A stretch of 61,765 nt of DNA, filler included, from Platydemus manokwari (Eukaryota): NCBI GenBank assembly GCA_037951405.1. It is 4 parts of 4 records of this genome, joined end to end, with 100 filler letters (N's around TTAATTAATTAA, not from the genome) between each part and the next. Parts side by side here need not be neighbours in the genome. Positions count along the whole stretch, not along the records: positions 1 to 22,737 come from JBBMOY011178099.1; 3 more parts are not named here. One strand, given 5' to 3'. The notes below the pieces were generated by a model. The model saw nothing but the letters and a program-made list of their open reading frames with translations. It was not told the origin of the DNA and ran no database searches. Shown here piece by piece: positions 3,792 to 21,650 of the stretch. Position 1 is the stretch's first letter; every line of letters begins with the position of its first letter. The position numbers were made by a program, and so were the translations under genes.

Positions 3792-3895
3792 CTAATTTAT
3801 TAATCGAATGCTATATTTAAAAAATAAAATATTTATTTACTGAAAATCGTTCACATTATTTTATATTTATGACAAATGAAAATTTCGATCTGATT

Positions 3896-6800
3896 TTATC
3901 TATGAGATCTGAAAAATCTGTATAGAACTTTTGTATCTCGTTCCACGGTACAGTGTTGATCAATGAGAGATACTCGAGTTTTGTTCAGAATCAATAACAG
4001 TATGGCCAGCATGGCAAGATAGAATGTCTAAACAACAATTAAATATTAAATCAAAATCAAGCTTCACCTGAACAACGGAAATAATGCAAAAGATGAAATA
4101 ATAACTAATTTCGATATTCTTTCCAATTCCGCATATAATCAATAGAGCACTTGCCATTAAATTAAAAATTCCAAATATAAATGCCACGATAAATCCATAT
4201 AGTTGGCGTATATCTTTGGTACACAGATATGTTATGATGCACATGGCTATCGTGACAACAATCAACAATACACTAGGTAATAGTATAAACTGTATATTGA
4301 GAGGGATTCCCAAATTAAATCTAGATAAAAATTTCAAAGTAATCATTTCTATTTGAACTTAAAAGCATAACGATCCATCAAAAATTCGATGTGAAATAAA
4401 AATTTATTCTAAAATTTCGAATATAAAGATATTAATGATTTTTTAAAAATAATCAGAAAATTTTCATAATTGAAGAAAGATAAATAAGATAATGAGCTTG
4501 TTATGTCGATAAACAATGATAAGCCAGAGTTGAGAAATAGATGAGGAAATGTATTGATCCGAATAACCATCGTTATACTCTTTATTTGGAGTTCGAATCC
4601 TGATTGATGCTAGTAAGAAAATGTTACAAAATCTAATTTTTAGACTTGTAACCACAATTAAACATAGTGATGATTAGTGGAACAATGTTTATCTCTTGAA
4701 ATATATATATAAAACTGATATACACAGTTTACGCTTGATTGATGTATATAATATTTATAAGATTAAAAACTGAGACTTTGGGTGTAACATGAATGGGTTA
4801 CCAAAGGATGGTCATTGTTGACCTAGTTAGGAACCGTTGTGTCAATTACTTCACATGTATCTATAAATCTTTTATAAAATTATTTGGAAATCTCAATGAA
4901 AGATTAATTTAAGATTTGGAATGATAATTTTTAAAATCTCAACAAAATTTTCAAACAATACTGTTGATTAGACATTTCGGTCTCTTTATACAGAACACAT
5001 TACTTCTATCACCCAGAGTAGCTACCTAGCAAGAAGGTATTGCAGTTTGAGATATTCATCAAAGAGATTCAAAAGAATATATTATAATTCGTCAAATATT
5101 ATTAACTGAGAATTACTTGTCTACATATGGATTGAGCGAAAATTTTGAGTACGTGAATATTAAAAGAAAAAATAACCAAATCCCAACAATCTTAAATTTT
5201 GGACAGTTTTTCGAATTTTTTAATGACTTATTTCTGATTTTATTGTAAATTTAAAAAATTACAGGGGCTAAGTAATGAAATTAATTGCTAAATAGTGAAA
5301 ATGAGTTTGGCTTTTAATTTTTACCGTATATATTAGTTAATATCTTATATTATAATCATAAAGATTATTTAACAAATCACAATGCAACTATCGATCATCC
5401 GTGAAGTAATTTGACTATGAAAAAATAATAAATAAAATTTAACAAACACTTCTGGGCTGCACTCCTGAATCCATTTAAAAGAAATAATCGAAATTGTTGC
5501 CGATGTAACTAAATATGAAATAAGAATCTAATTAATTATTAATATATTACTGGGTCCAGCTCCTAGTAAAATTGGTATAACAATGTTTTGGATAGTGTCC
5601 TGATTTTCTGCGACCGCCTTGAAGAATACGTACAGTTGCATGTAACACGGGGTTACAACATAATTCATATGAAATAAGTTTCCCATCACACATGTCAACT
5701 GAAAAAAAATGTAAAGAAAGCAAAATATGGTACATGTTTTACTCCTGTGTGGGCTTTTCGGTTGTACATTTTATAATATGTTATAAAAGAAAAGAGAAAC
5801 TGACTCAATCCCAAGCACATTAAAAAGATAAGTATTGTTATTGTTTCCCTAAAATCTACGTTTATTTGATTAAGAAGATACAAAAAATAACCTCATGTGA
5901 TAAAATCTGCTTCTGTTGAACATGAAACTACATCTAAAAATTAAATTAGGAGTAATAAAATCATGAATAAATCAAACATCAAATAAAAAAATAAGGTGAC
6001 TATTGTTATTGACAAAGCTTGCAACAAAATTTTCATCTCCATTATCACTGGTAAGAAATATCTTTTATCTTCGTTCAAATACTTAACTCTATCATCCGTT
6101 AAATCATAATCGGGAAATTCTCTATATAATATTAAATTAATTTTTTCCCTATTAGCTCCAGGAATAATCTAAATAATTTTAAATATCATTCTAAATAAAT
6201 ATAGAATACTTCTTTTAAAGCCAATAAACCCTCTTCGGTGCACTTACATTCATAAATAGTATCATTGTTATTATTGAATGTGGAAGTTACACATTCTTTT
6301 GATGACCAATCAACTGCAGAAATATTCCTTTTAATGCATTCATAAGTTTTATTTGTTAAAGGTTTTCTAAAAAACACTGAATAATTTACAAATTCAATCG
6401 AATTATTATATAATAGTAAAAATGTTTCAGAGTCGTTTATATTGATGTGGAAATTTTTTATTTTTTTTGGTAAATTAAAAACTCCAATTAAGTAAATTTC
6501 TTGTGTAGTTTGCTTGATTTTCAATTCCGTATTTCTTGATAACTTAAATTGAAATTTTGTTTAAATAATTGTTACATTATTGAGAGCTCACTTTAAAAGG
6601 TTGTTCTTCGTTATTATTTGTAATATAAACAAATAAGTGACTACCATTCGCACTTCTTTTTACATATTCACCCATCAAAGCATATCTTGCATATTTTAAA
6701 ATTCTAAAATAATATAACATCAATTTTAGATGCAAATAATTTATTGTCTCAAAAGAAAACATGATGAGCCACTAAGCGAAGATTTTATGAAAAAGCGAAT

Positions 6801-7750
6801 AAAGCTGGACGAAGATCTATTGCCAAGGAAAATTAAAACTTCAAAAACATTTTTATCAAAAAATGATATCATTTCATTATTAAAAAGTTCTGAATCCTTT
6901 TACATGGGTTTTGAGGAAGATTACCATATAGAGGTGTTGGAAAATTATTCCCATCTAAAAAATCCTTCAGTAACATGTAATGGTGTGGAAGCAGTTCAAG
7001 TTGAGAATATGGACATCGACGGAGATGAATATTTATATGATTATTATATTTATACAAAAAATGATGTGATTGAGTATTTTAGCGATGATGAAGCAGATAG
7101 ATATGAAGAATCAGATAATGATACCGACCACTGCCATGATGGAATATTTTTAAATTCAAAATCCGTTCGTTTTTTTTCGTAATAATAAAAATTTTGAGTT
7201 CTATTTTAATTTAATATTCTTACATGTTTATAATTTGATTTGTTATAACAAGGTCGATTTGTAATTTCCAAGATGTCTGCAAAATTCTGTTAATGATCGT
7301 TGATATTCTCACGAAATTATTGTATGTCGAATTATAATATAATATACTCAGTAAATCTGTAAATGTTTTTATCGCCGACAATTCATCAGTTGGAACCATA
7401 TTTTTTGCTTCTGCAGTGGAATATTTATTATAACTACAATTGTGAATTATTCACCAACCGATTATCAAACACTCAAACGGAGCCTCGGTGTTAATTGATG
7501 GAAATTCCAAACGGATAATTTCCGATTTTTTTCTTGTTGCATGGGTGATTTGTAAAATACAAATATGATATTGGCTTAGAATTGATTTGGAATAATAAAA
7601 TATTTCTTCTGAAAATGAAACATCATTTGACAATCTTGAAACGAAATGAAAATTTGAATGATTTCTCCAGAATATTGGATAAATAAAATTATTCTGACTT
7701 TTAGTACAATATAATATTAAGAAAATAAAGATAGAACTAATTAACAGCAT
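3896..7750 (-). CDS. Divergent adhesion-GPCR-like 7TM receptor (paralog A), ~621 aa: signal peptide, GAIN/GPS-like region, 7TM
   Basis: 11 phase-consistent exons: 7750-7459, 7410-7224, 6703-6592, 6542-6210, 6168-5978, 5933-5892, 5848-5734, 5698-5551, 5508-5448, 4320-4068, 4027-3896. Signal peptide MLLISSIFIFLILYCTKS. GPS-like ECIKRNISAVDWSSKECV...YECKCTEEGLLAL. Seven hydrophobic segments. TM7 YYFIFCIISVVQ carries a phase-0 intron after Q, as in family-B GPCRs. The 5448/4320 junction is the least certain. Confidence 0.75.
6730..7182 (+). CDS. SLC7A6OS: SLC7A6OS/IWR1-like RNA polymerase II nuclear-import factor, nested antisense in intron 2 (6704-7223) of the aGPCR-like gene
   Basis: Motifs match the family as I recall it: N-terminal LKRKHDEP...KRIKL (cf. 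VKRKRSAEP...KRLR), PSVTCNGVE (cf. PDVILCNSVE), DEYLYDYY (cf. DDYVYDIYY), acidic tail. Confidence 0.7.
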   Translation: MQIIYCLKRKHDEPLSEDFMKKRIKLDEDLLPRKIKTSKTFLSKNDIISLLKSSESFYMGFEEDYHIEVLENYSHLKNPSVTCNGVEAVQVENMDIDGDEYLYDYYIYTKNDVIEYFSDDEADRYEESDNDTDHCHDGIFLNSKSVRFFS

Positions 7751-8569
7751 TTAATAATATTTTATTTGATATTGATTTTAAATCAATTTTAAAACAACGA
7801 TTTCACTTGTTAATATAAATCTGTCTCAACAAAACTAAAAGTCAATAAATGTAATTATTGCAAACTTTCTTCTATAAATAAATAAATATTAATGTGTTAC
7901 CTAATGTACATATTAATTTTTGCTGTTTGATGTCTTCCCATGCTTTCTTTTGGTTATCACTTCATTTAATATCACACTTCCATCTAGATAGATATGAATC
8001 GGTTACATATAAAGTGGGTCTATTTGATTTCCCATCTTCAATACAAATGATATCATTCACTTCTAATTATTTCTGAGGATTTTAGTGCTCAATGAAAGTT
8101 AAACCATGAGAATCCTTCATGATCTTTTAAAATCCTAATTTTTGCATTGATTTGACTTCAACTAACTAATGATAAACGAATTAGGATAAAAATGATTGGT
8201 TGTACATTTTGATGTTGGAGACACATGTTAACATTTACAATGAGCAATGAAGATATTTAGTTAAATTTTTATACGAAGTTTAATATGTATCACGGGTTGG
8301 ATTACATGTTGCGATTCTAGTTTAATTTTATCTTATACAAATGTTGGGTATATCACAAATCAATCAAAATGGTCACAAGATGGTCAAATAATGGCCCAAT
8401 CAGATTCGTTCTAATATTAATTCATATTTAGACGCGAAGAATTGAAAGGCACATATCTACAAACGGCAGCAAGCTCAAATATCCGCCAATGGCACGAGAG
8501 ATAAGTGGGAAATTTCAAGTAGATCGATCCACTAACAAATTCAACAAAAGGAAAACGAAGATTCGTGAC

Positions 8570-9350
8570 ATCGAGCAGACAACCTCGATTGGTCTATAAA
8601 AGTGGTTGAGTTCCATTAATATCTCCCAGTCTTTTTTAGTCGATAACTTCAGTGTTTAGATTATCTTTTGTGATTTTTAATAATCAGTCTTTATTATTAC
8701 TTTCCATTCTGTTTTTGACTTTCAGGTGCTGATCCGGTCTCGAGTGATTTACTTTGTAAATTGTGAAAATATTTACTGTTGTTGTTGAGATTTTGATTGT
8801 GATAATTTTGTTAATACAATTATCAGATCTAAATTGCTGATTGATAACCCATCACAAATATTACATGTTCAGAAGACACCATCAGCATTGATTGAGAATA
8901 GGATAATAAACAAACCAACTGATTTTTCACTGCTTGTGTCATCTTAATTTTGACAAGGTTTATTTGAAATTGATTTGATAAGTAATTATGTAGATATTTA
9001 TGGTGAGTGAGATGAAATCTTGCTAAAGAAAAACGGATTTTCACCTCGGAACAATTGTTTTGGCACTTTAAACATTTGCATGCCTACACAACCATACAAG
9101 AATAGCAATCAACCAATCACAGCTGAGTTAGGTGGTAAACGACGATTGAACAAAGGGGCATAACCACATAGAAGGATTGTTCAATCCCACAAATACAAAA
9201 ACTAATAAGCCTAATAAAAATTTTTAAAAGCAAATATTAAATCAAAATGTGATACAAACATGACACAAAATTACACAGATATTGAGTATAAACCTCGATG
9301 TAAAAATGGCCAACTCCCAGTTGGAAGCCAAATTTTGATTACTTTATTGA
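8570..9350 (+). mobile_element. Longest copy of a dispersed repeat family (possible LTR/MITE relic)
   Basis: 8995-9350 is homologous to 39025-39375(-), 44085-44430(-), 46505-46690(+) and partly 28153-28320(+). 8570-8780 resembles 28980-29220 (shared gtctataaaag..gttga). Confidence 0.7.
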
Positions 9351-10329
9351 GTAGTACAAGTATTAGTTGTGAATCAAGTTATCTTGGAAGTCTTATTGAT
9401 TAGTACGCATATTATAAATAAGTCTATGGCCTTCGATTTTTGAAGTCAGTAATTATTTAGTCATTCATTTGTAAAATCCAACAATTATGTTTAATAAAGT
9501 ATAGGCAATATCTATTTTTATCGGAATTGAATTAAAAAAACATGTGTGATCTAGGATTAATAAAACCTAATATAATCTATTACTTCTCCTAAAATTGTAT
9601 GTAGTTAATTAGGCATAATGTAAGATAAAATAAATAGCTAATAATGATTGCAACAATAAATGAAAAATATCAAATGTACAAATCGATAGGTCTAAGTTAT
9701 TCTTTCTAAGCATTTCAAATAAATATTAAGATAAGTGATTTTAGTATACTTTATTGAAGTAAATATTCCCCTTTCCAAGAATTTTATCAAACGTTTGCAG
9801 TTATGAATTTATTTGGTGATCCTATCATTTATCTGGGATGATGTTTGCAGTTATAATAAAAGAAATTCAAATTAGCTTATAATCCCTTTGTCAGGATTAT
9901 TGATTTATAAAATTAGATTTGATAAAAAAAGAATCACAAATAAAATAACTATTTTACTAATCTTTACTAATCATCGATCGGTACCTCAACATGTAAACGA
10001 ATATAATATTTGCTTGTTTGTGATTAATACTTCTAGAGACATTCGTGCGACTGAATAATTTCTATCTTTGTACAATGACATATACCTCAAAACGGAACGC
10101 AATAATAAGGTCTAATTTTTGTAACTCAATTTTTGTACACTGATTATAATTGTACAAAATTATAATTGTAAAATAAAACTTCTTGCTAAATCAATAAGAT
10201 AGTCAACGGACAATACTAAAAAATCGTAAATCAAAGTTATTTAGAATTACAAAATTTCTGAGAGTCACAATAGATTCAGCACCCAAAATATCGAAACAAC
10301 AACAAAAGGTACCGATCATAAAAGACTAT

Positions 10330-10620
10330 CAGTTGCACTCGGTATTCGATTCCTATTATGGGTATGGAGTATATGTTGACCTGATGTCTTACAGTTTTTC
10401 TTTTCATTCGTTAAACCTTCTGGCAATTAACATATTGAGAGATTTCTTTTATTTTCCATATCACATTGACCTATCTCGTTAGTGTTCGCCAATCGTCAAA
10501 AGAATATTACTTATGGGTTGATATTTTTGAATAATCTGATTGGCTACTGGTACTTTCGTGCATCATGCCAGTATGTATCGATTTTTTGAGGATTATTCAC
10601 ATAGTCTCCGTAGACATTTT
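10330..10620 (-). mobile_element. Possible degenerate LTR-retrotransposon integrase fragment
   Basis: Stop-interrupted fragments PQKSIHT and TNEIGQCDMENKEI resemble the integrase motifs P..IHTDNG and P.TNGQ.ER.NK.I. Confidence 0.25.
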
Positions 10621-12020
10621 GATTATCTTTTTATAAAATACTCCGCAGTAGCATACATGTACCAACTGTATTATAACTAAATTTTAAATTCAGCTGTTTA
10701 TTCTATCAAAATTTAACGTTTATTCTAAACAGCTGGAAGGCTAAATACTCTTAATGACTTAATTTAATTAATTTTAATAGCTCAATCATATATAATTGCG
10801 TTTCTATGACTTCCACCTATAGTAAAAATTAACATTAACAATCTATAGTTGAATAATTCACAGAAATTCATTGGTCTGTTCAGGGTCATTGTGATTATTA
10901 TGGTGATCTATTAAACAAGTTAATGGATGAGTTTAAAGTTGGATATTAGTTGAAATATTTTGTTTAATATCAGAGTTCGTATGTTGTGAAATGAAAGGGA
11001 TTAGTGGTTAGTTGCTTGAACAAGGTATGGAGATTATTTATTCTACAGGGAGTTATCGAGTGGAGTTCATTGTTATTCGATGGATTTTTTGGCATATTAT
11101 CTATTTCTGAGGTTGGCAAAATATTTTATGGATTATGGATTTCACAAGAGAGTGTTATGGTGGTATGTAAAATTTAACTTCCAAATAAAATTATAAAAAA
11201 TAGCTACTAAAATTAATAAGGATACTTTTTTAAAAAACATTTTGAAAATCGTTCAGCATCAATAGTGTTTGGCCATAAAATACTTTGCATGTTAAGGCTA
11301 TTATTAAGCTTTTTGAGAATTCTAACAATAAAAACTTTGGTGGTATTTATCATTATTATTTATAATTATTTATTATTTTAATTATTCTTAGCGTATTATT
11401 GTGATTACAAAATATTTTCAGTCTTAGTTATTTTGATCATCATATTTGTATTTATGAATAAAAGTACGCAATATACGATATATTCACTGATAAATGTTAG
11501 ATATTTGATAAAATAATTGAAATCAAATATCTATTTTTAGCTGCATTTCTCATTTATCATTCGAATGATTAAAAATTTGTTGTGGTTAATTTGGATCATC
11601 TCTACACCAGAAGGACTATGACATCACTTAATGTTTGTGTTCATTCTGAATATTTTAAATGCATCTCGTCTTTGTCTATATTTAAAATCAAATGGATATT
11701 TTTAAAGGTTAAATAAAAATAAAAATTAAACTTAATCAAACCTTAAAATCAATAAAACCTATTATCGTTCTCATAAGAACTATAATAACAATAGTAGTAA
11801 GTTAAGCTATATATGTTATCAAATCTAATTAACGAAATTTAAAGAACGAAAAAGATTTTAAATTTAAGCTGAAAATATATTTCAGGTACACAAAATGAGA
11901 TATTTTCATAAAATTAGCAAAGTATTCTTCTCTTTTTATTCTTTAATTTGATGAAATAAATAAATTCTATTCGAAAATCTAAAAATGAAAATAAAATCAA
12001 AGCAGATAAACATAATTTTG

Positions 12021-15000
12021 TTACATACTAGAATCACGCTTTCCGAAAATTGTCAGATTTTTCATTGGTAAAATAGCTAGACTAATCAACCAAATTAAAA
12101 GATAAACCGCTTGGAGAAAGACTCCAAAGGAATAATAGAAATATCTCAAATTATCGTAGTTATACGAGTCTCTCATTTGTGCAACTTGATAAAAGATTAG
12201 ACCATGCATGAGTTCTAAGGGATAAATAGCGATCATTATTAATAATCCACCTCCTCTTTTTGGTAGAAAAGTTGCAGCACCGGTCAGAGTCAACGATAAT
12301 GACACAACAACAGTCATTGGTACCAAAACGAAAAATCCTGCCCCATAACCCATTGGTAAAAGGCTACAAAATAGAAAATACAGAGCAGAAAATATACATC
12401 TGCTTACGTGGCACGATTGATTGATATTAAAGCTATATCGAACATTGCTCCGATGAATATCAGAGTCATAACTAAATAATTCAATTTCATGGCAAATTAG
12501 CTAAAACAACTCACAGCAACAGATTATTACCACGGTTGTCAAAATCGAATCGAAAAACCTGAATGTCCAGAGATTGATGTTTACTGTTTGTACGAATAAT
12601 ACAAGCTGCATACCTCCAAGTAGAAGAGTATATGTAGTAATAGAATAAAGAGTTAGAATGCCCCAAGACTAGATGGATGAATTATATTTCCGAATGCAAA
12701 ATGGTTTCAACTTACCAGATATTCACTGCCTATGCGTGATGCTAGAACCATTTTAAGGAAATTTACAACCGGTGGTTGTAATAACAGAATATTAAACCAT
12801 AAAATTATGAGAAGGCAAACGGATTGACGACTGAAAATAATTTAATCTGAAATCAATATAATAATTCCAAAAAATAAAACTAAAATCAAATATTTCACTA
12901 TTTGAAAATACTGGATCTTAATCGTTAAAAATTTTCGATAACATTTTTTGAAACCATTTATCGAAAGTAATTCAATGAATGATAAACGAAAGTGATTTTT
13001 AAATAGGTGTTCAACATTGTAGATATTCAAATAAATTTAGACCTGTGAAGTCATTGATTCTGGATTTCATTTATGAATTGATATCCTCTTCTTCATTATA
13101 CTAGAAATTGCAGCCTCCTAAAGTGGAATAGCTAAGCAAATGCGACCAGAGGTGGTTTACATATTGAGCTGAATATTTTTTTATGGAATAATTTATTGAA
13201 AGGGAATTTATATTTGTATTGTGACGAATAACTCCATTTGATAAAAGTATTAAACTTATCATATTACATTATTTGATATCAATAATGGTTTAAAAATACT
13301 TCTCCATTATTTCTGAATAATTTTTCAACTTTTAAGGTAATAAAAGAGACATTTCAATAGCTCTAAATAAACAATAGGCTTGTTCTAGTTATTATCATTA
13401 AAGTTGTAATATATTGTTGATATCACTAAAGTATTTTCGACTTGATTAATAGTTTTAGGGAAAAATTAACATTATTTTTAATATAATGTATTACCAAGAT
13501 GTTAGGTTTCATCATTTATCAAGTTATTTACAGTTATTTTTTGTTTTAAATTATGAATTTCATAAAGGTCTTGGATAAAGTCAAGAATAGGAGTCCTAAA
13601 ATAAAATTTTTCATTTATTGAGTATATTGCTAAGATATACATTTAACTATATTCTTTAAAAACATTTTGAATTTTTTATTTAAGTACTTAAGAAGGATTT
13701 TAGTTGTTTGAAATCAAATATTAAACACACCAGAACTTCAAAATTTCCTAAAATTTGATTATTTGAAAAAGGTATACAAGTTTTATTGAAAAAAAATTAT
13801 TGAAAATTATCGAGGACTCCTTTTTTAACATTTGAAGCAAATTTAGAGATATTCTCAAATTTGCAATTATTTTACAAAACTAAGCAATGTTATTGTTAAA
13901 CATGTCTGTATTTAGGTAATTCGATCTATAATAATTTAAATTTAGAATCTCAAATAACATAGACGTGTTGTTATTATAATAGGAATTTGGTTTTAAAACT
14001 ATGTTTGTAACTGTTAGACATACTAAAAAGTGAGATATTGACTGATTTATAAATTGTTATAAATAATTAAGTTATAAAATAATCTCAAGCGCAAAAAATT
14101 CATTATTACTAAAGTAAGTCAAATGGCCCCTTTTCTTAACTTAAGCCAAACTATTTATACGCAATTTATAACAAAACTAAAATCAACTTGAAAACTTGTC
14201 TAATTTGAACCCATTTAAAAGTATTATATTTTCAATTTTTAATTTTTAATATTTTAATTTCTAGTTTTTAACAACTTGTTTTATATATTTTATCAATCAT
14301 AATGAATTGAAAATTGAACAATAATGGATTATTTTTGCTTAATAAAATTCAGAATACATATTAAACGAGAAAATCCATTATTGACGAAACAAAACCTAGT
14401 TCGGATATACCTATAAATGAGAACATAAACCAAACCTGTTGGATAATTACGAAATGTAACCAAACTATGGTTGTATTTTAGTCTTGCCAGAAAACTCACA
14501 AAACAATGCACTTTACCAGTTTATTGATTAATTATTTGGAGATAAATAGATTAATTACCTTTGACTAATGGAATACTTTTTTTAGGGAAATGCAATTTTA
14601 AATCACAGATTTCATACGATTTAGATCTATTTAATTTATTCGATTCACATACTTACATTGGTAGGATATCAAGAAAATTTTTTAATGTAGATTTAAATAA
14701 AAATTTTAAAATCTATTATATCAATGTAAACGTTTGTTTCATAGTTTGAGTGAAATATATTCTGATAATGAATTGAAACAGGTAAGTGATAATACAGTTG
14801 AATAAAGTTGTCATGGATTAAAACATACCATAGAGCGAATTATTAAATCATGAGTCCTAGGTATTATATGGGTCAGTGAAACGAGGTTTTCGATGAACTA
14901 TCTGCTGTGATTGTCAATGGTTCGATCAATAAACCCTCCTAACCACAACAGCTAATACTGAAAAAGCAAAACTTTTCACTACGATTCTATAAATAAATAA

Positions 15001-16273
15001 ATATTTGCTAACTTAGTTGGAGAGACAGTAGTCCACATTTTCGAATAATAAATCCTGTAAACATAAATGATTATCTTATATAAAATCTCGAAAATGCTTA
15101 CAGCAATACCAAAATAATAATAATATTGATGGTACAAATAGTTATGGTTAATACAAGAAGTGTCTGGGATATTTTACCGAATCGATAATATTTTTCCAGA
15201 GCAATACGCATATCATTGGTAATAGGCTTCTCTACTGGCTCAAGTTTTACTGGATCTTTCACAGGATCATTTTGATATTTCCTACCATTGGAAAGCTAAA
15301 ATAATCGTTAATATTTATCATTTTATTTTCTGATTATTACGAAATTTCTTTTGAAAGTGATTTTCACTAGCCCAAACCTGTCACAAAAACAGCTTGACCA
15401 ACCCATCATTATATTCGTAGTATTGCATACTTTCTGGTAAGAAGAGTTGCCTTGCTTGTATCTCACTTCACAATTGGATGTTTCAATAATTGATGCAGTT
15501 CGTACCAGAATCTCATATTTAAATGAGGATGTATTAAGATCGTCTCCCAATACCAAATAAAGTATTTTTGAACTCATTTTAATTGCAAGAGACGCATAAT
15601 TTGTTGAGTGTTTATTGTCGACAAATTTTACGTATAATCGTTGATCAATTCCCTGCACATGTTTTACATTAAAAACTACATAAAAACGATTTTGAATTGT
15701 ATTAACCTGCCCGACAAAGCTTGTTTTTGGATTTATATATTTATGATAAATTACGTTTTTCGCATCGAGAAAACTGGAATTTGATGAATTATCGTTATTG
15801 ACCAATAAAGTTTGAGTTACTCGAATCAACCTGTATAATAAAAAAAATCAGGGATGAAAACCAAGACTAAACAACAAGTGTAAATTTTCGATGAATTACG
15901 TGATGACTGTGAAACTGCGATCGAGGATTTTGAAGTGTGTTCACAGCGAATCAATGAGTTTCAGTGCTATTCGGAATTGACTTAAACAATATGAATTGTA
16001 CAACGAAAAATTATTTCCCACTGGCTACTAGTTAAGAAAGAGAAATAACTTTGTTATGTAATAAATATTTACAACTTATTGCTTGATAATTTTATTTAGG
16101 CGGTCATCTTCAGAAAGAACTAATCAGGAATCACTTTTTGAAAATAAGTTTATTAAACTTTATTAAAACATTGTTGAATAATTTATAGAAAAGTACACTT
16201 GTACACGAAGCTGATTAGCAGTACTGTGCGGTAAATAAATTCTTAGAAAATCAATGTTTTCAATTCTGATCAT
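12021..16273 (-). CDS. Divergent adhesion-GPCR-like 7TM receptor (paralog B); 5' end disrupted or unresolved
   Basis: Exons 16024-15945, 15830-15341, 15295-15102, 15054-15013, 12830-12716, 12668-12515, 12471-12408, 12363-12021. Same intron phases as paralog A, with identical 42-nt and 115-nt exon lengths. GPS-like CEVRY...KVC...SSCFCDRFGLVKI. TM3 MQLVLFVQTV vs paralog A MQLYVFFKAV; TM5 FVLVPM vs FILLPS; TM7 YYSFGVFLQAVYL vs FIFCIISVVQTFYL. Confidence 0.7.
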
Positions 16274-17109: not shown

Positions 17110-19536
17110 CACATTATCATTCCACACGAGCACGTGTTATCATATCCGTCTTCTGAAACCATGTTATTCAAAAGAGTATAAATGAAAGAAATTAATATAT
17201 CTGGCTCTGAATAGATATGTTCGATTATGTGATACCTAAACGAATAGAATTCCAATCAAAACACACATCGACGTTTGTGATATAGATTTTTACCTAGAAC
17301 TGAATTGGGAATTTGCATTGATAAAATTGAACAGAGAAACGATATAATCTGTCAAATCGAAATCATTCTTTATACTCAGATGTAATACGTTTCTACAATC
17401 TAAATTTTCACTTTCAATAACAATTTTCCAATTGATATGGTTTTGTTGATCAATGCGATTGAATATCCTGGATTAACAAAATTGATTAAAGAAAACCAAA
17501 ATTCTAAAATGAAAAATAAAAAAGTTGATTGCACTCACAAGTCTGACAACAATAAAGATTCAATGCTATCCAAACAAAGGAAATTGAACAACGATTTGTC
17601 GAGGTCCGATTGAGATTTTTTAGATAAAAACTGATACTCTTCTTTCGACAGTGTTGCGTGATATATTTCTAAGAATAATGTTTAGAAATATAATACACCA
17701 TGTATGTGAAGTTTTAAACCTGTAAAGCAATAGAAAATCGATAACCAAGTTTCGTGAGATATACACGACGTAATCCAATTTCGAAGTTCTTTGAGATTTG
17801 TAACTGAATGAAAGAGCAAAATCATTGACTCGATCCATAATCGATCCGTTTCTTGTGGCCATATTTCTTCATTCAATAAATCCAAGAGATGAGGATATCT
17901 ATATGTTTTCTCAATAACGCGTTTTTCAAACCAATCAACGGTTTGAGTTGATTTTTCATTTATGGAATCATTTATATTCGCAACATCAGTCAGATTCATA
18001 CAATATTTTGATTTATTGATATTATTAATATCGCAAATATCCATTATTAATGCGGGAAATAAGGGAAAAATTCTATATGAGAAACAAAGAGTTAACAGTG
18101 TTGATGTCATCGACATGATTTTATCTGAGACTGGCAGAGGCTTTCTCCATTCTGAAATATGTATCGGATTTGACCAGCTATTACTAAACAGATAATCCAT
18201 TTCATCATAAGGCACAAAATTTTCATTAGAGCCATCATATACATCGAAAAATTCCGTGGATTTTGGGGAAAAATTTGGAAAAGTTCCACTCAAATTCAAA
18301 ACATCTAATTGAACGGTAAACAATTTTTGCCAGTGAAGTAAATTTAAAATCAGCCACGATTCACAGAAATTGGACAAGGATTCAAGGAACTCGTCATTGG
18401 AGTTTGTTTTACTGCTTGTTCCAAGATGTTTAAATTTTTCCCTAAACCATATACAGTCAAATAAGGTGTCTGAGAACATTTACCATGCTATGTACACGTT
18501 GGCTTCCAATTCCATGAGGTTTATCTTGGATTGGTTTGTCTGGAATTGTGAAAAATAATTTTCAAAAATAAAAAGAAATGTCACAGAAAGTTAGAATTTA
18601 TTTGAATAACAAGTTAGAGGTAGTACAATTTTTACCAGAAACCTAACGTCCATGTTATGGGGAGGCAGCTGTTTTATTATCGATAATTATACCTATAAAT
18701 ATTGGAACAAGATTCATTTTATTGGGAAAGGTTATCTTTATTTTTATCGAATTTTAATTATCGACAATTATTCTTAATTTCACCACAAAATCAATGACAC
18801 TAATGGATTGTAGCTCATAATTGTATTTAACTGATTTATTCATTCTTTCAAGTTCAATAAAACAAACATCGAACTTTGCTCTTCTAAATAATGGAGATAT
18901 TATTCATTACAACATTCATTTTTCATCATAATCGATAAACACTTTATATATAAAATACAAGAATTATATCTTTAATACAAACAAATGATCGTTATAATAT
19001 TATGACATCATTTTTAAGATATTGAAATATTTATTATAGAAAATTAAATATTCTCAATTGGATGCAGGATCTCTCAATATTATTATGCAATAGATATTTC
19101 TGTATTCAAATTATATAGCTATTGGAATTAAGATTATAAAAATATCTGTAAATTATGATTCTACTAAATTAAATTATGTTTATTTTATTAATAGAGCGGG
19201 GAAAAAATTTTAAAAATAATATGAGATTCAAATCATGAATTATATTTGCTTTTAATTCTTGTGGATTTTAAAGTTCCGATAAAGACTTAAATATACGTAA
19301 AATCTAATCAATACAAAAATATAATTACCGATAATAAGAATGGCTTATAATCGTATAAAACAATTAACCATGAAAAACTAAATTAAAATGAACTTGTCGA
19401 ACCAATAAGGAAACCCATAGTAAGTGAAGACCGAGTTACATATATGGAAAAATAAGTAAATCGCCGATATTAACGTATTATTATTGTTGTCATTTTTATT
19501 TTATTATTATTAATATTATTATTATTATTATTGATA

Positions 19537-19568
<32 letters not shown>

Positions 19569-21650
19569 TAAGCCAAGAACCAAAAGTAGAGAGAGAATTA
19601 TTAAAGATTCTTCGACCACTTGACAGTTAATAATTGATAGATAATAAAAATCAACTGACCTCATCAAAATGTTTAGCACAACTTTGAGCAAATGTCAAGC
19701 CTTCGTTCATGAATATATTATCACGAGAATTACGAGAAAAGGAATCCATCGAACTTATAGAGCTAATAAGATCCATTTGTGAAATATATTTCGATGTTTT
19801 ATCGAACAGTGTTTTCAGTATTTTAGGTGCTCTTCTCTTTAAATTATCCGATGCTTGCATTTTGATTGAGGACGATACATCTAACAGAAATATCGATTTC
19901 CAAAATAGAAATTAAAATCTATCCGAAAACAATACCTGATTCCGCTGAAAGATCATTGGACGATTCTCCATTAAAATCATTGACGCCAATATTACAATTT
20001 CCTACTGGCATAATCATATCTCCTCGAATTGAGCAATACAATTTTTGATATTCTTCATTGTCTCTGATCTCCACTTGCAATTTATTGGCTTCTACGAATC
20101 TGTATTCCAATTCGGCAGCCTTTTCGACAATTAAAGTTAGAAGATTGGGAGTAAATGTATTGTAAATATTTCGAATTTCCAAATTGTCTTCCTGTATCAT
20201 ATAATTATCAGAATCGGAAGTGAGAGATAGAAACAAATCTATCGCTGATTTCGGATCACTATTTTCATTAATGATTCTAATCAAAGCCTCACTCATCGAG
20301 ACAATGGAAACAATGACTATTTCTCTAATATTAAAATAAAAATTATCCAATCAAATCATTGAAAACTAGTGAAAGGTATATTTAAACTAGCATACATATG
20401 GTATAAGTATATATAAAACTATAGAAGTGACTTTCACAAGAAATAAAATGCAATTCTTGTTTTATAAAAAGCTTTAAGAATTTTAAAAGATAATTTATTA
20501 AATTTCTATATTTATTATGATTATTATAAAGACCAATAAATGTTTGATAAAAAATCGGCCCGCTGGTATGCGCTTGACATATAATGAATCCATGCGATTC
20601 ACATTGTGAGATGACGGCAACCAAAGCAATACTGAAAAAAACCGAGAACATTTGGTCATGCCTAATGTCAAAAATTATCAATAACTTGCAAAATCAAATC
20701 GAATAATTTTTATTGATTGCAGATGTGATAGTAATGGATATTAATGATCACTTCTGATAATCTATCCTTAAATTATATATTGATTTTAGTTACTACTTTT
20801 ACTATGTATAATAAAACAGAAATATTTCACATAAAAATCTATAATATCGTTATATATCGTTATCGATCGTTATATATATCGTTATATATTCAGAAATATT
20901 TCGACATAGTAGTTGGAATACTTAAGCTTGTAATTATTGGAAATTAAACGACCGGCAATTACGATAATTAGTCAATCGATAGACCGATTACAAAGATTAT
21001 TTTATCAGTTAGAATCGTGTAGTAACTTGAGTCCACAATTACCTGATTGGCTCAATATGATACATTATTCTATGACTCAGTATATCAGTATTCGATTTCA
21101 TAATAATTCATCAAATAATTTAATAACATAATAATTTAAAGAGTACCAGTAGTAGATATGTTCTAGTAATCAATTATTTAGCACAATACGCCATAAAAAT
21201 AAATAAAACGCAACAATTCTCAAATGCAATATACCTTTGAAAACTCAAAATCATTATTCCGTGATTGGAATAAATAGTTTTCGTTAAATTGGTGCCACAA
21301 TCGATCGTTATCAAGCATGATTTTAAAATTAAATCAATTACAAATATCAGCCCTCCAATATCACCGGCAAATATGAGATTATTTCTAAAAATACGAAAAG
21401 TATAAGAAAAAATAAACATATATGATGCATTTAAATGAATATCGACAATATTAAACAATGTTGAGAAAACACTTCTGAACTCAAACTTCAGATCCCGATA
21501 TTGGATCGTCTTTGTCGGTTTTGTATGACAGTAACATTTCAATTTTATTTCTAACACACTAATATGGAAAATGAAATATTTCAAAAATAATTCCGAGGTA
21601 TCCGCAAATATAATTGGGAAGCCATCTCCAAAACAGCCGTGGCATCGATC
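17110..21650 (-). CDS. Multi-exon gene(s) with WD40-like N-terminal blades and a helical C-terminal region; tentatively HPS5/TECPR2-like
   Basis: Same-strand coding blocks 21174-21584, 19919-20350, 19651-19860, 17682-18479 with canonical splice sites. HTKPTKTIQY...LIFAGDIGGLIFVIDL...IMILSFQR resembles the HPS5 blade H...VTALCW...VFVGDHAGKV...LLISSLTR. Boundaries are approximate, and it may be more than one gene. Confidence 0.45.
19501..19570. repeat. (ATT)n microsatellite
   Basis: Direct sequence; produces the spurious poly-Asn ORF. Confidence 0.9.

Follow-up and report, generated by a model that had tools for sequence, protein, structure and literature searches.

Can a lineage lose both the cleavage site and the profile signature of the adhesion G-protein-coupled receptors (GPCRs) and still belong to them? 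The question is raised by two neighbouring genes, here called A and B, on the minus strand of contig C1178099 of Platydemus manokwari (assembly GCA_037951405.1; 911 Mb, ~2 million contigs, GC ~27%). The contig supplies the first part of the window analysed here, a stretch of 61,765 nucleotides including filler, along which all positions are counted. A first-pass annotation had described A and B as a tandem pair of minimal, apparently non-cleavable, adhesion-GPCR-like receptors. We find that they are genuine, highly divergent tandem members of a family whose only catalogued member is GCR138 of Schmidtea mediterranea (UniProt A0A193KUQ0, GenBank ANO39096.1, 642 aa), and that they most likely represent an uncleavable branch of the adhesion GPCRs that profiles no longer recognise.

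Two intact tandem genes of the GCR138 family

Genes A and B were searched exon by exon, with GCR138 as the full-length proxy for searches and folding; scripts spliced adjacent exon ends only, as a check on reading frames. In an exhaustive HMMER search of 1.84 billion representatives, the ectodomain exon of gene B had GCR138 as its sole match (E 1.8e-5). Word-index protein searches with the gene B transmembrane (TM) exon, with GCR138, and with GCR138 residues 385-630 returned nothing but GCR138, and the best match to GCR138 in the whole genome is 38-41% identical. By BLASTP, the exons of gene B, counted from a proposed first exon, align with GCR138 in colinear order: exon 2 with residues 202-305, exon 3 with 325-374, exon 4 with 376-386, exon 5 with 390-428, exon 6 with 431-478 and exon 8 with 503-612 (E down to 6.5e-32, identity 28-47%). 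The colinearity takes in the 42-nt exon, where by tblastn IYYSKMWTTVSPT of gene B pairs with LYYRIHWPSVSYS of GCR138, as well as the 115-nt exon and the C-terminal tail. Because the colinear GCR138 is transcript-backed, the splicing of gene B is independently supported, and gene B can be regarded as an orthologue or paralogue of GCR138.

The two proteins share one architecture; 28% of residues are identical in the ectodomain, rising to 40-47% across the TM exons. Both are encoded by multiple exons and carry the same Cys framework, a Gly after C-x-C-x3, a 52-aa stalk and the C-tail motif GKRD..F R.E.IY. They differ in a ~54-aa segment of GCR138 (two predicted helices, 143-181) that has no counterpart in gene B, and in the N-terminal 100 aa of GCR138, which were not located for gene B. 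Gene A is far more distant from GCR138. It is tied to the family by exon 3, which resembles residues 211-307 (24% identical, E 2.6e-6 when searched against GCR138 alone), by a weak resemblance of exon 2 to residues 119-151 (TIINRI vs TTINRI), and by the exon structure it has in common with gene B. Significant colinear similarity to GCR138 thus covers the ectodomain and TM core in gene B and chiefly exon 3 in gene A.

The gene models were built by hand from frame-keeping splice sites, with GT-AG at every junction, and give two intact, spliced neighbours:

3896-7750, minus strand: gene A, 10 exons, 582 aa (hand model, per-exon hydropathy)
7750-7479, 7433-7224, 6534-6210, 6168-5978 and 5933-5892 (42 nt), minus strand: gene A exons 1-5 (hand model)
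5848-5734 (115 nt), 5698-5551, 5508-5448, 4320-4068 and 4027-3896, minus strand: gene A exons 6-10 (hand model)
6210-6534, minus strand: third exon of gene A, ectodomain, beta-rich, closing with a motif like the GPCR proteolysis site (GPS), 6338-6210
5892-5933, minus strand: gene A 42-nt exon, basic first intracellular loop, equal in length and phase (2 to 2) to gene B 15054-15013
5734-5848, minus strand: gene A exon for TM2, 115 nt long (106 nt with the donor at 5742)
4068-4320, minus strand: ninth exon of gene A, covering TM5 and TM6 and reaching halfway through TM7
11914-15830, minus strand: gene B, homology-supported part, 8 exons, ~486 aa from ectodomain exon to stop
15830-15341, 15295-15102, 15054-15013 (42 nt) and 12830-12716 (115 nt), minus strand: first four exons of this part of gene B (hand model)
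12668-12515, 12471-12408, 12363-12029 and 11978-11914, minus strand: last four exons of gene B (hand model)
15341-15830, minus strand: gene B ectodomain exon, 163 aa, all-beta, GPS-like motif at 15472-15341
15013-15054, minus strand: gene B 42-nt exon, matched to GCR138 by tblastn
12716-12830, minus strand: gene B TM2 exon, 115 nt, TTTCAG / GTAAGT sites, 41% identity to GCR138 390-428
16197-16273, minus strand: exon proposed as the start of gene B, with its ATG at 16273; unsupported

Gene A ends with TAA at 3898-3896, and its introns (35-1127 nt) are all GT-AG. Hydropathy analysis of each exon indicates a signal-peptide-like N-terminus, ~315 aa of ectodomain (~350 aa had first been estimated), seven hydrophobic segments and a basic C-tail. 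Two points of this model are uncertain, the junction of exons 1 and 2 (7479/7433) and the donor of exon 6 (5734 or 5743). At 115 nt, exon 6 would be followed by an intron of 35 nt with a poor donor, GTACCA; ending it at the GTAAAA donor (5742) gives an exon of 106 nt and an intron of 44 nt, and is equally possible. The two large introns of gene A measure 689 nt and 1127 nt. The former holds an opposite-strand open reading frame (ORF) at 6730-7182 (plus strand, within intron 2; 150 aa, acidic), which is not part of the receptor, is single-copy in the genome, has no Pfam family, and is of a length unlikely by chance at 27% GC.

Gene B stops with TAA at 11916-11914, reached via a GTATGT donor at 12028, and its largest intron (12831-15012, 2182 nt) lies between the 42-nt and 115-nt exons. 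The start at 16273 proposed earlier found no support: no signal peptide was found in that exon, no homology backs it, and residues 1-100 of GCR138 match nothing anywhere in the window, so the 5' part of gene B was not located.

From the GPS-like exon onward, A and B have identical phases and paired exon lengths of 191/194, 42/42, 115/115, 148/154 and 61/64 nt, and in both the TM5-7 exon runs exactly 84 codons to a conserved Gln. Each gene encodes seven hydrophobic segments, and the introns are mostly 40-50 nt. Open segments of 124, 132, 159 and 174 codons occur at the locus; because stops are expected about every 12 codons in this AT-rich DNA, these are taken as real exons. The description of a same-strand tandem pair of spliced 7TM genes with parallel phases is therefore upheld by the models and by the colinearity of gene B with cDNA-backed GCR138. 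The 42- and 115-nt exons, which had been called identical, are the same in length but not in sequence, and the 115 nt of gene A has the 106-nt alternative given above.

A and B are true tandem paralogues, and their mutual identity is as low as the first-pass annotation had it. No significant match between their exons was found by BLASTP. A gapless, exon-anchored comparison gave an overall z of 3.2 and 10 identities over the 84 codons of the TM5-7 exon. In own-genome protein searches with four exons and GCR138, A and B failed to find each other and no further paralogue appeared in 911 Mb. With one relative among 1.8 billion representatives, these searches bear out a lineage-specific, fast-evolving family. 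The family alignment consists of GCR138 and four gene B exons; a MAFFT alignment of all exon fragments misaligned most of them and was discarded. An exact look-up of the genome's ORFs in the protein collection found them absent.

The only published record of GCR138 is a line in a table, filed under Srf/w, in which a GPS-like ectodomain goes unmentioned (Saberi et al. 2016, PMC4862687); our literature search found no mention of the protein in running text. The entry records 11 exons, the label Srf/w from CLANS clustering and no BLAST hit; the supplement (S3 Data, S4 Fig) gives 7 TM helices by TMHMM and a confident ORF. GCR138 has a log2 sexual/asexual expression ratio of 9.07 and an in situ hybridization signal in testes, and its RNA interference (RNAi) gave no phenotype (PMC4862687). 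By analogy with GCR138, A and B are probably expressed in the male germline.

A GPS-like cysteine framework with a replaced cleavage triad

Six-frame translation of the window contains the pattern C-x8-16-C-x9-15-C-x-C exactly twice, at 6338 (gene A) and 15472 (gene B), each closing an ectodomain exon. In shuffled sequence the mean is 0.13 such patterns, and two or more occurred in 0.5% of shuffles. A four-Cys GPS-like motif is thus present in both genes, as had been noticed from the sequence, and GCR138 carries it as well:

Gene A: C-x14-C-x14-C-K-C with W-S-S-K-E-C, then T-E-E-G-L-L-A-L
Gene B: C-x14-C-x11-C-F-C, then D-R-F-G-L-V-K-I
GCR138: C-x14-C-x11-C-Q-C, then N-R-T-G-V-L-I-I

The spacing agrees with C801, C820, C832 and C834 of latrophilin, in which the disulfides are C801-C832 and C820-C834 and the cleavage triad is H836-L837-T838 (PMC3321182). 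In all three proteins this two-disulfide framework stands before the last ectodomain strand. GPS copies of canonical type in the same genome have sequences such as ...W-S-S-D-G-C-x11-C-A-C-N-H-L-T-N-F-A-L-L-M; one of them contains NWSSDGC, which the W-S-S-x-x-C of gene A matches. The genome also encodes a canonical adhesion GPCR at C859423:828-4679, a single open frame of ~1284 aa with Laminin_G_3, a GPS (…CDHLTSFALLM) and 7tm_2, in which ~13 aa separate the GPS from TM1.

The canonical copies of the genome keep HLT, HLS or HMT at the cleavage site. In A, B and GCR138 the H-L-T/S triad is replaced by TEE-G, DRF-G and NRT-G, in agreement with the loss reported for A and B in the first-pass annotation. 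Position +4 after C-x-C, which corresponds to T838 of latrophilin, is Gly at P1' in all three, with no His or Leu ahead of it. The latrophilin substitutions H836S, L837A and T838G each impair cleavage, and T838G abolishes it (Araç et al. 2012, PMC3321182). The P1' Gly is thus the natural equivalent of this cleavage-dead mutant. The T-x-F-x-x-L-M pattern of the Stachel is likewise replaced, by G-LLALKE in A, G-LVKITF in B and G-VLIIKK in GCR138. Because the triad is replaced in all members, the receptors would remain uncleaved, with no release of a Stachel by autoproteolysis; non-cleavage of A, B and GCR138 is likely and, as an inference from the residues present, well founded.

The distance from the Gly after C-x-C to TM1 is ~52 aa in A, B and GCR138, in place of the ~45 aa first estimated, and AlphaFold2 (AF2) predicts the second half of this stalk as a helical extension of TM1.

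Non-cleavage as such is a known phenomenon, since loss of the cleavage consensus is frequent among adhesion GPCRs and LAT-1 functions uncleaved (Prömel et al. 2012, PMC3776922). The present proteins resemble the cleavage-less receptors (CELSR/Flamingo, EMR and others; PMC3776922) in placing the GPS two-disulfide framework directly before the last strand and a 7TM region after it. The replacement of catalytic residues is also shared, with the P1' Gly matching the T838G change of latrophilin (PMC3321182), and LAT-1 is a precedent for function without cleavage (PMC3776922). They differ in that the known cleavage-less receptors are recognised by PF00002, PF01825 and GAIN profiles, none of which A, B or GCR138 match. 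The known receptors also have a short linker between GPS and TM1 and usually carry adhesion modules, whereas here the linker is ~52 aa and extra adhesion domains are lacking. Finally, the helical GAIN subdomain A would be reduced in GCR138 and A, or absent in B.

Probable adhesion-GPCR ancestry and its alternatives

The adhesion-GPCR likeness drawn in the first-pass annotation survives in part: it is indirectly supported by ESM Atlas neighbours and by weak Foldseek matches to GAIN domains, whereas PF00002, PF01825 and profile-profile comparisons are negative and a second structural aligner, VIA, is not GAIN-specific. For GCR138, all ten nearest Atlas feature clusters are adhesion GPCRs with 7tm_2 and GPS (best feature score 0.92, 182/256 features in common), and so are all ten nearest structure clusters, the best having a TM value of 0.54 over 457 aligned residues that span 13-611 and take in ectodomain and 7TM together; by the Atlas's own statement, which belongs with the opposing points below, ten consistent neighbours also arise for a third of shuffled proteins. 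An Atlas search with the gene B TM exon alone returned uninformative bacterial membrane proteins.

In the AF2 model of GCR138, residues 195-309 make up 10 strands with two helices ahead of them, and the last strand comes directly after C-x-C. Against 350,542 PDB chains, the top Foldseek matches of the model were the GAIN domain of BAI3 (4dlo; E 0.013, probability 0.96), full-length CD97 (8ikj), the GAIN domain of CD97 (9mqr) and that of CELSR1 (8vy2), all weak (E 0.013-0.06 overall). VIA placed model residues 202-310 on BAI3 715-866 (Z 7.1, root-mean-square deviation 4.0, 108 residues) and superposed the last strand of the model on the GAIN terminal strand. A GAIN fold comprises a helical subdomain A and a 13-strand subdomain B, of which the model would show two helices and 10 strands at low confidence. 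In hhalign, the alignment of GCR138 and gene B was colinear over TM1-TM4 with PARF1, a class-B receptor family of the same genome, but with a probability of 1.7% and an E of 0.03. Overall a GAIN fold is favoured, though inconclusively.

Several results weigh against this ancestry. At E<=1, no Pfam family was found for any exon or open segment of A or B, nor for full-length GCR138. The HMMER search for the 7TM core (PF00002) and the GPS (PF01825) that had been proposed for these genes finds 90 and 10 places in the genome, respectively, none of them on the contig of A and B; neither domain is detected in the A and B exons or in GCR138. A hidden Markov model (HMM) of the genome's own PARF1 receptors scores ~0 bits on every exon of A and B, and the hhalign result with PARF1 is no better than that of rhodopsin-like controls of the same genome (E 0.088). 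Sequence searches of the PDB with exons, GCR138 and the family profile came back empty. The structural check gave GAIN as the top Foldseek matches, but these are weak and the GCR138 model has a predicted local distance difference test (pLDDT) score of 46.7 overall (65-76 within 250-310), while VIA ranks a GH98 beta-sandwich (Z 8.1) over the GAIN domains of BAI3 (7.1) and CD97 (5.9). Packing of the 7TM bundle in the model is too poor for classification, and because of this a wide VIA search was swamped by helical hairpins. The ectodomain exon of gene B, modelled alone, has nine strands at pLDDT 47 and matches only generic sandwiches (Z <5) in Foldseek and VIA. The stalk is three to four times the canonical adhesion-GPCR length, and Saberi et al. 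placed GCR138 with rhodopsin-like Srf/w receptors. Among public sequencing runs, the locus was found in one DNA-type run, whose contig is colinear with 3805-7757 without differences or spliced joints, and in no RNA run.

These negative results are what would be expected if A, B and GCR138 formed an independent, lineage-specific 7TM family that does not derive from adhesion GPCRs, with a generic four-Cys sandwich whose likeness to GPS and GAIN is convergent or a tool artefact. Such a family would fail every profile-based test, as observed; the preference of VIA for the GH98 sandwich, the generic matches of the gene B exon and the long, 52-aa stalk fit it as well. We nevertheless consider it unlikely, if worth serious weight, since the Atlas gives none but adhesion GPCRs as neighbours, by feature and by structure, with a structural alignment that spans ectodomain and 7TM; four of the six top Foldseek entries among the 350,542 chains carry GAIN domains; and canonical GPS motifs of the same genome are matched in their Cys spacing and, by gene A, in W-S-S-x-x-C. 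Highly improbable is the origin implied by the CLANS label of GCR138 (S3 Data of PMC4862687), namely rhodopsin-like chemoreceptors of the Srf/w cluster that acquired an unrelated N-terminal ectodomain. Neither GCR138 nor any exon of A or B matches 7tm_1 (PF00001), no (D/E)R(Y/F) follows TM3, which ends in TNLRIW, NINLW or FFKAV, and TM7 has no NPxxY. Moreover, hhalign against 13 rhodopsin-like receptors of the same genome aligned 24 columns, out of register, the Atlas neighbours include no rhodopsin-like cluster, and GCR138 has 11 exons and a 330-aa ectodomain compared with a single exon in its Srf/w neighbours in the table.

Whatever the parent family, A, B or both might be unexpressed relics of a decaying tandem array, an explanation that we regard as quite unlikely. 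In its favour, the two genes flank a probable dead copy, gene B has no detectable signal-peptide exon, no RNA run contains the locus, and RNAi of the Schmidtea homologue had no phenotype. However, the 10 exons of A and 8 exons of B contain no in-frame stop, GT-AG sites and conserved phases are found at all junctions, and chance is very unlikely to produce open frames of 124-174 codons at 27% GC; the lack of RNA runs amounts to missing data, not silence.

Two other families also invite comparison. PARF1, described as planarian-specific (Zamanian et al. 2011, PMC3261222), has at least 13 intronless copies in this genome, each of ~550 aa with a signal peptide, a clear 7tm_2 and a somatomedin-B-like CxCDxxCxxYGDCC motif. 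Like the present family it is restricted to planarians and adhesion-like, and it has no canonical GPS. The differences lie in its 7tm_2 (59 bits), its intronless genes and its somatomedin-B domain, whereas A and B score ~0 bits against the PARF1 HMM, have 8-10 exons and lack the somatomedin-B motif, and so do not belong to PARF1. The polycystin-1 family also has a GPS-type motif ahead of its first TM helix, but PKD1-type proteins cross the membrane with 11 TM helices and their first cytoplasmic loop holds a PLAT domain, unlike A and B with 7 TM helices and a first loop of 14 aa (the 42-nt exon). GOLD-domain 7TM proteins (GPR107, GPR180, TMEM87) were dropped as candidates, with no Pfam hit and no Atlas neighbour among them.

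On balance we hold it probable that A, B and GCR138 make up a small, planarian-restricted 7TM family, most likely of uncleaved adhesion GPCRs whose GAIN/GPS and 7TM regions have diverged beyond profile recognition. A and B would be tandem paralogues within this family, with GCR138 as the one member so far catalogued. Each protein would consist of a signal peptide and a ~300-aa ectodomain whose last ~110 residues form a beta-sandwich ending in the two-disulfide framework C-x14-C-x11/14-C-x-C and one further beta-strand. A ~52-aa stalk, the second half of which probably extends the TM1 helix, would lead to the core of seven TM helices, followed by a short, basic tail. The origin would most likely lie in an adhesion (class B2) GPCR with its GAIN/GPS and 7TM core now past profile recognition. 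The receptor would be made as a single uncleaved chain from which autoproteolysis could not release a Stachel; because of this, any signalling would be cleavage-independent.

A probable decayed copy, neighbouring frames and implications

The tandem array may have been larger than the pair first described. A and B are the intact tandem genes, but a probable decayed third copy lies between them:

9120-10340, minus strand: probable decayed third family copy, colinear weak tblastn hits

This region retains a GPS-like exon end with two stops and a conserved ...RNF|GTAAT donor. Next, a single intronless frame with two stops runs from TM1 through the counterpart of the 42-nt exon into the start of TM2; the end of TM3 is frameshifted, and a TM4-like segment reads CICGI. 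Its TM1 scores 28.9 bits against GCR138, where 150 shuffles reached a maximum of 28.1 and three real-sequence controls <=23.1. Because the family HMM gives 2.3 bits, the third copy is considered probable rather than proven.

Further ORFs flank the locus. On the plus strand at 970-2985, three ORFs of 79-145 aa with a repeated Cys pattern (CxxC ... Cys ... INCGF/INCGI/KKCGF) resemble a multi-exon or tandem-domain gene and have sub-threshold Pfam hits only. On the minus strand, ORFs of 265 and 143 aa at 17682-18479 and 19919-20350 mark another gene upstream of B, with no Pfam family and no relation to GCR138.

A more specific picture of the family can be drawn, although we put it forward tentatively and would not be surprised to see parts of it fail. 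GCR138, A and B would form a planarian-only, profile-invisible branch of the adhesion GPCRs in which every member has a P1' Gly, GAIN subdomain A is reduced or lost, and a ~52-aa stalk carries a helical extension of TM1. The branch would be germline-expressed, would evolve by tandem duplication and decay, and would have permanently given up Stachel release in favour of some other means of activation.

The practical weight of these genes is modest, as non-cleaved adhesion GPCRs are known, the Schmidtea homologue has no RNAi phenotype and the fold assignment is indirect. Genes such as A and B are missed by flatworm GPCR censuses that rely on profiles. The filing of Schmidtea GCR138 is corrected as well: it had been clustered with rhodopsin-like chemoreceptors, yet no class-A feature was found in it. 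If adhesion-GPCR ancestry is right, the family would be a natural experiment, a lineage fixed for a cleavage-dead P1' Gly that retained the GPS disulfides and the terminal strand, its GAIN domain being reduced and its stalk unusually long, and it would bear on the debate over whether adhesion GPCRs need autoproteolysis and a released tethered agonist.

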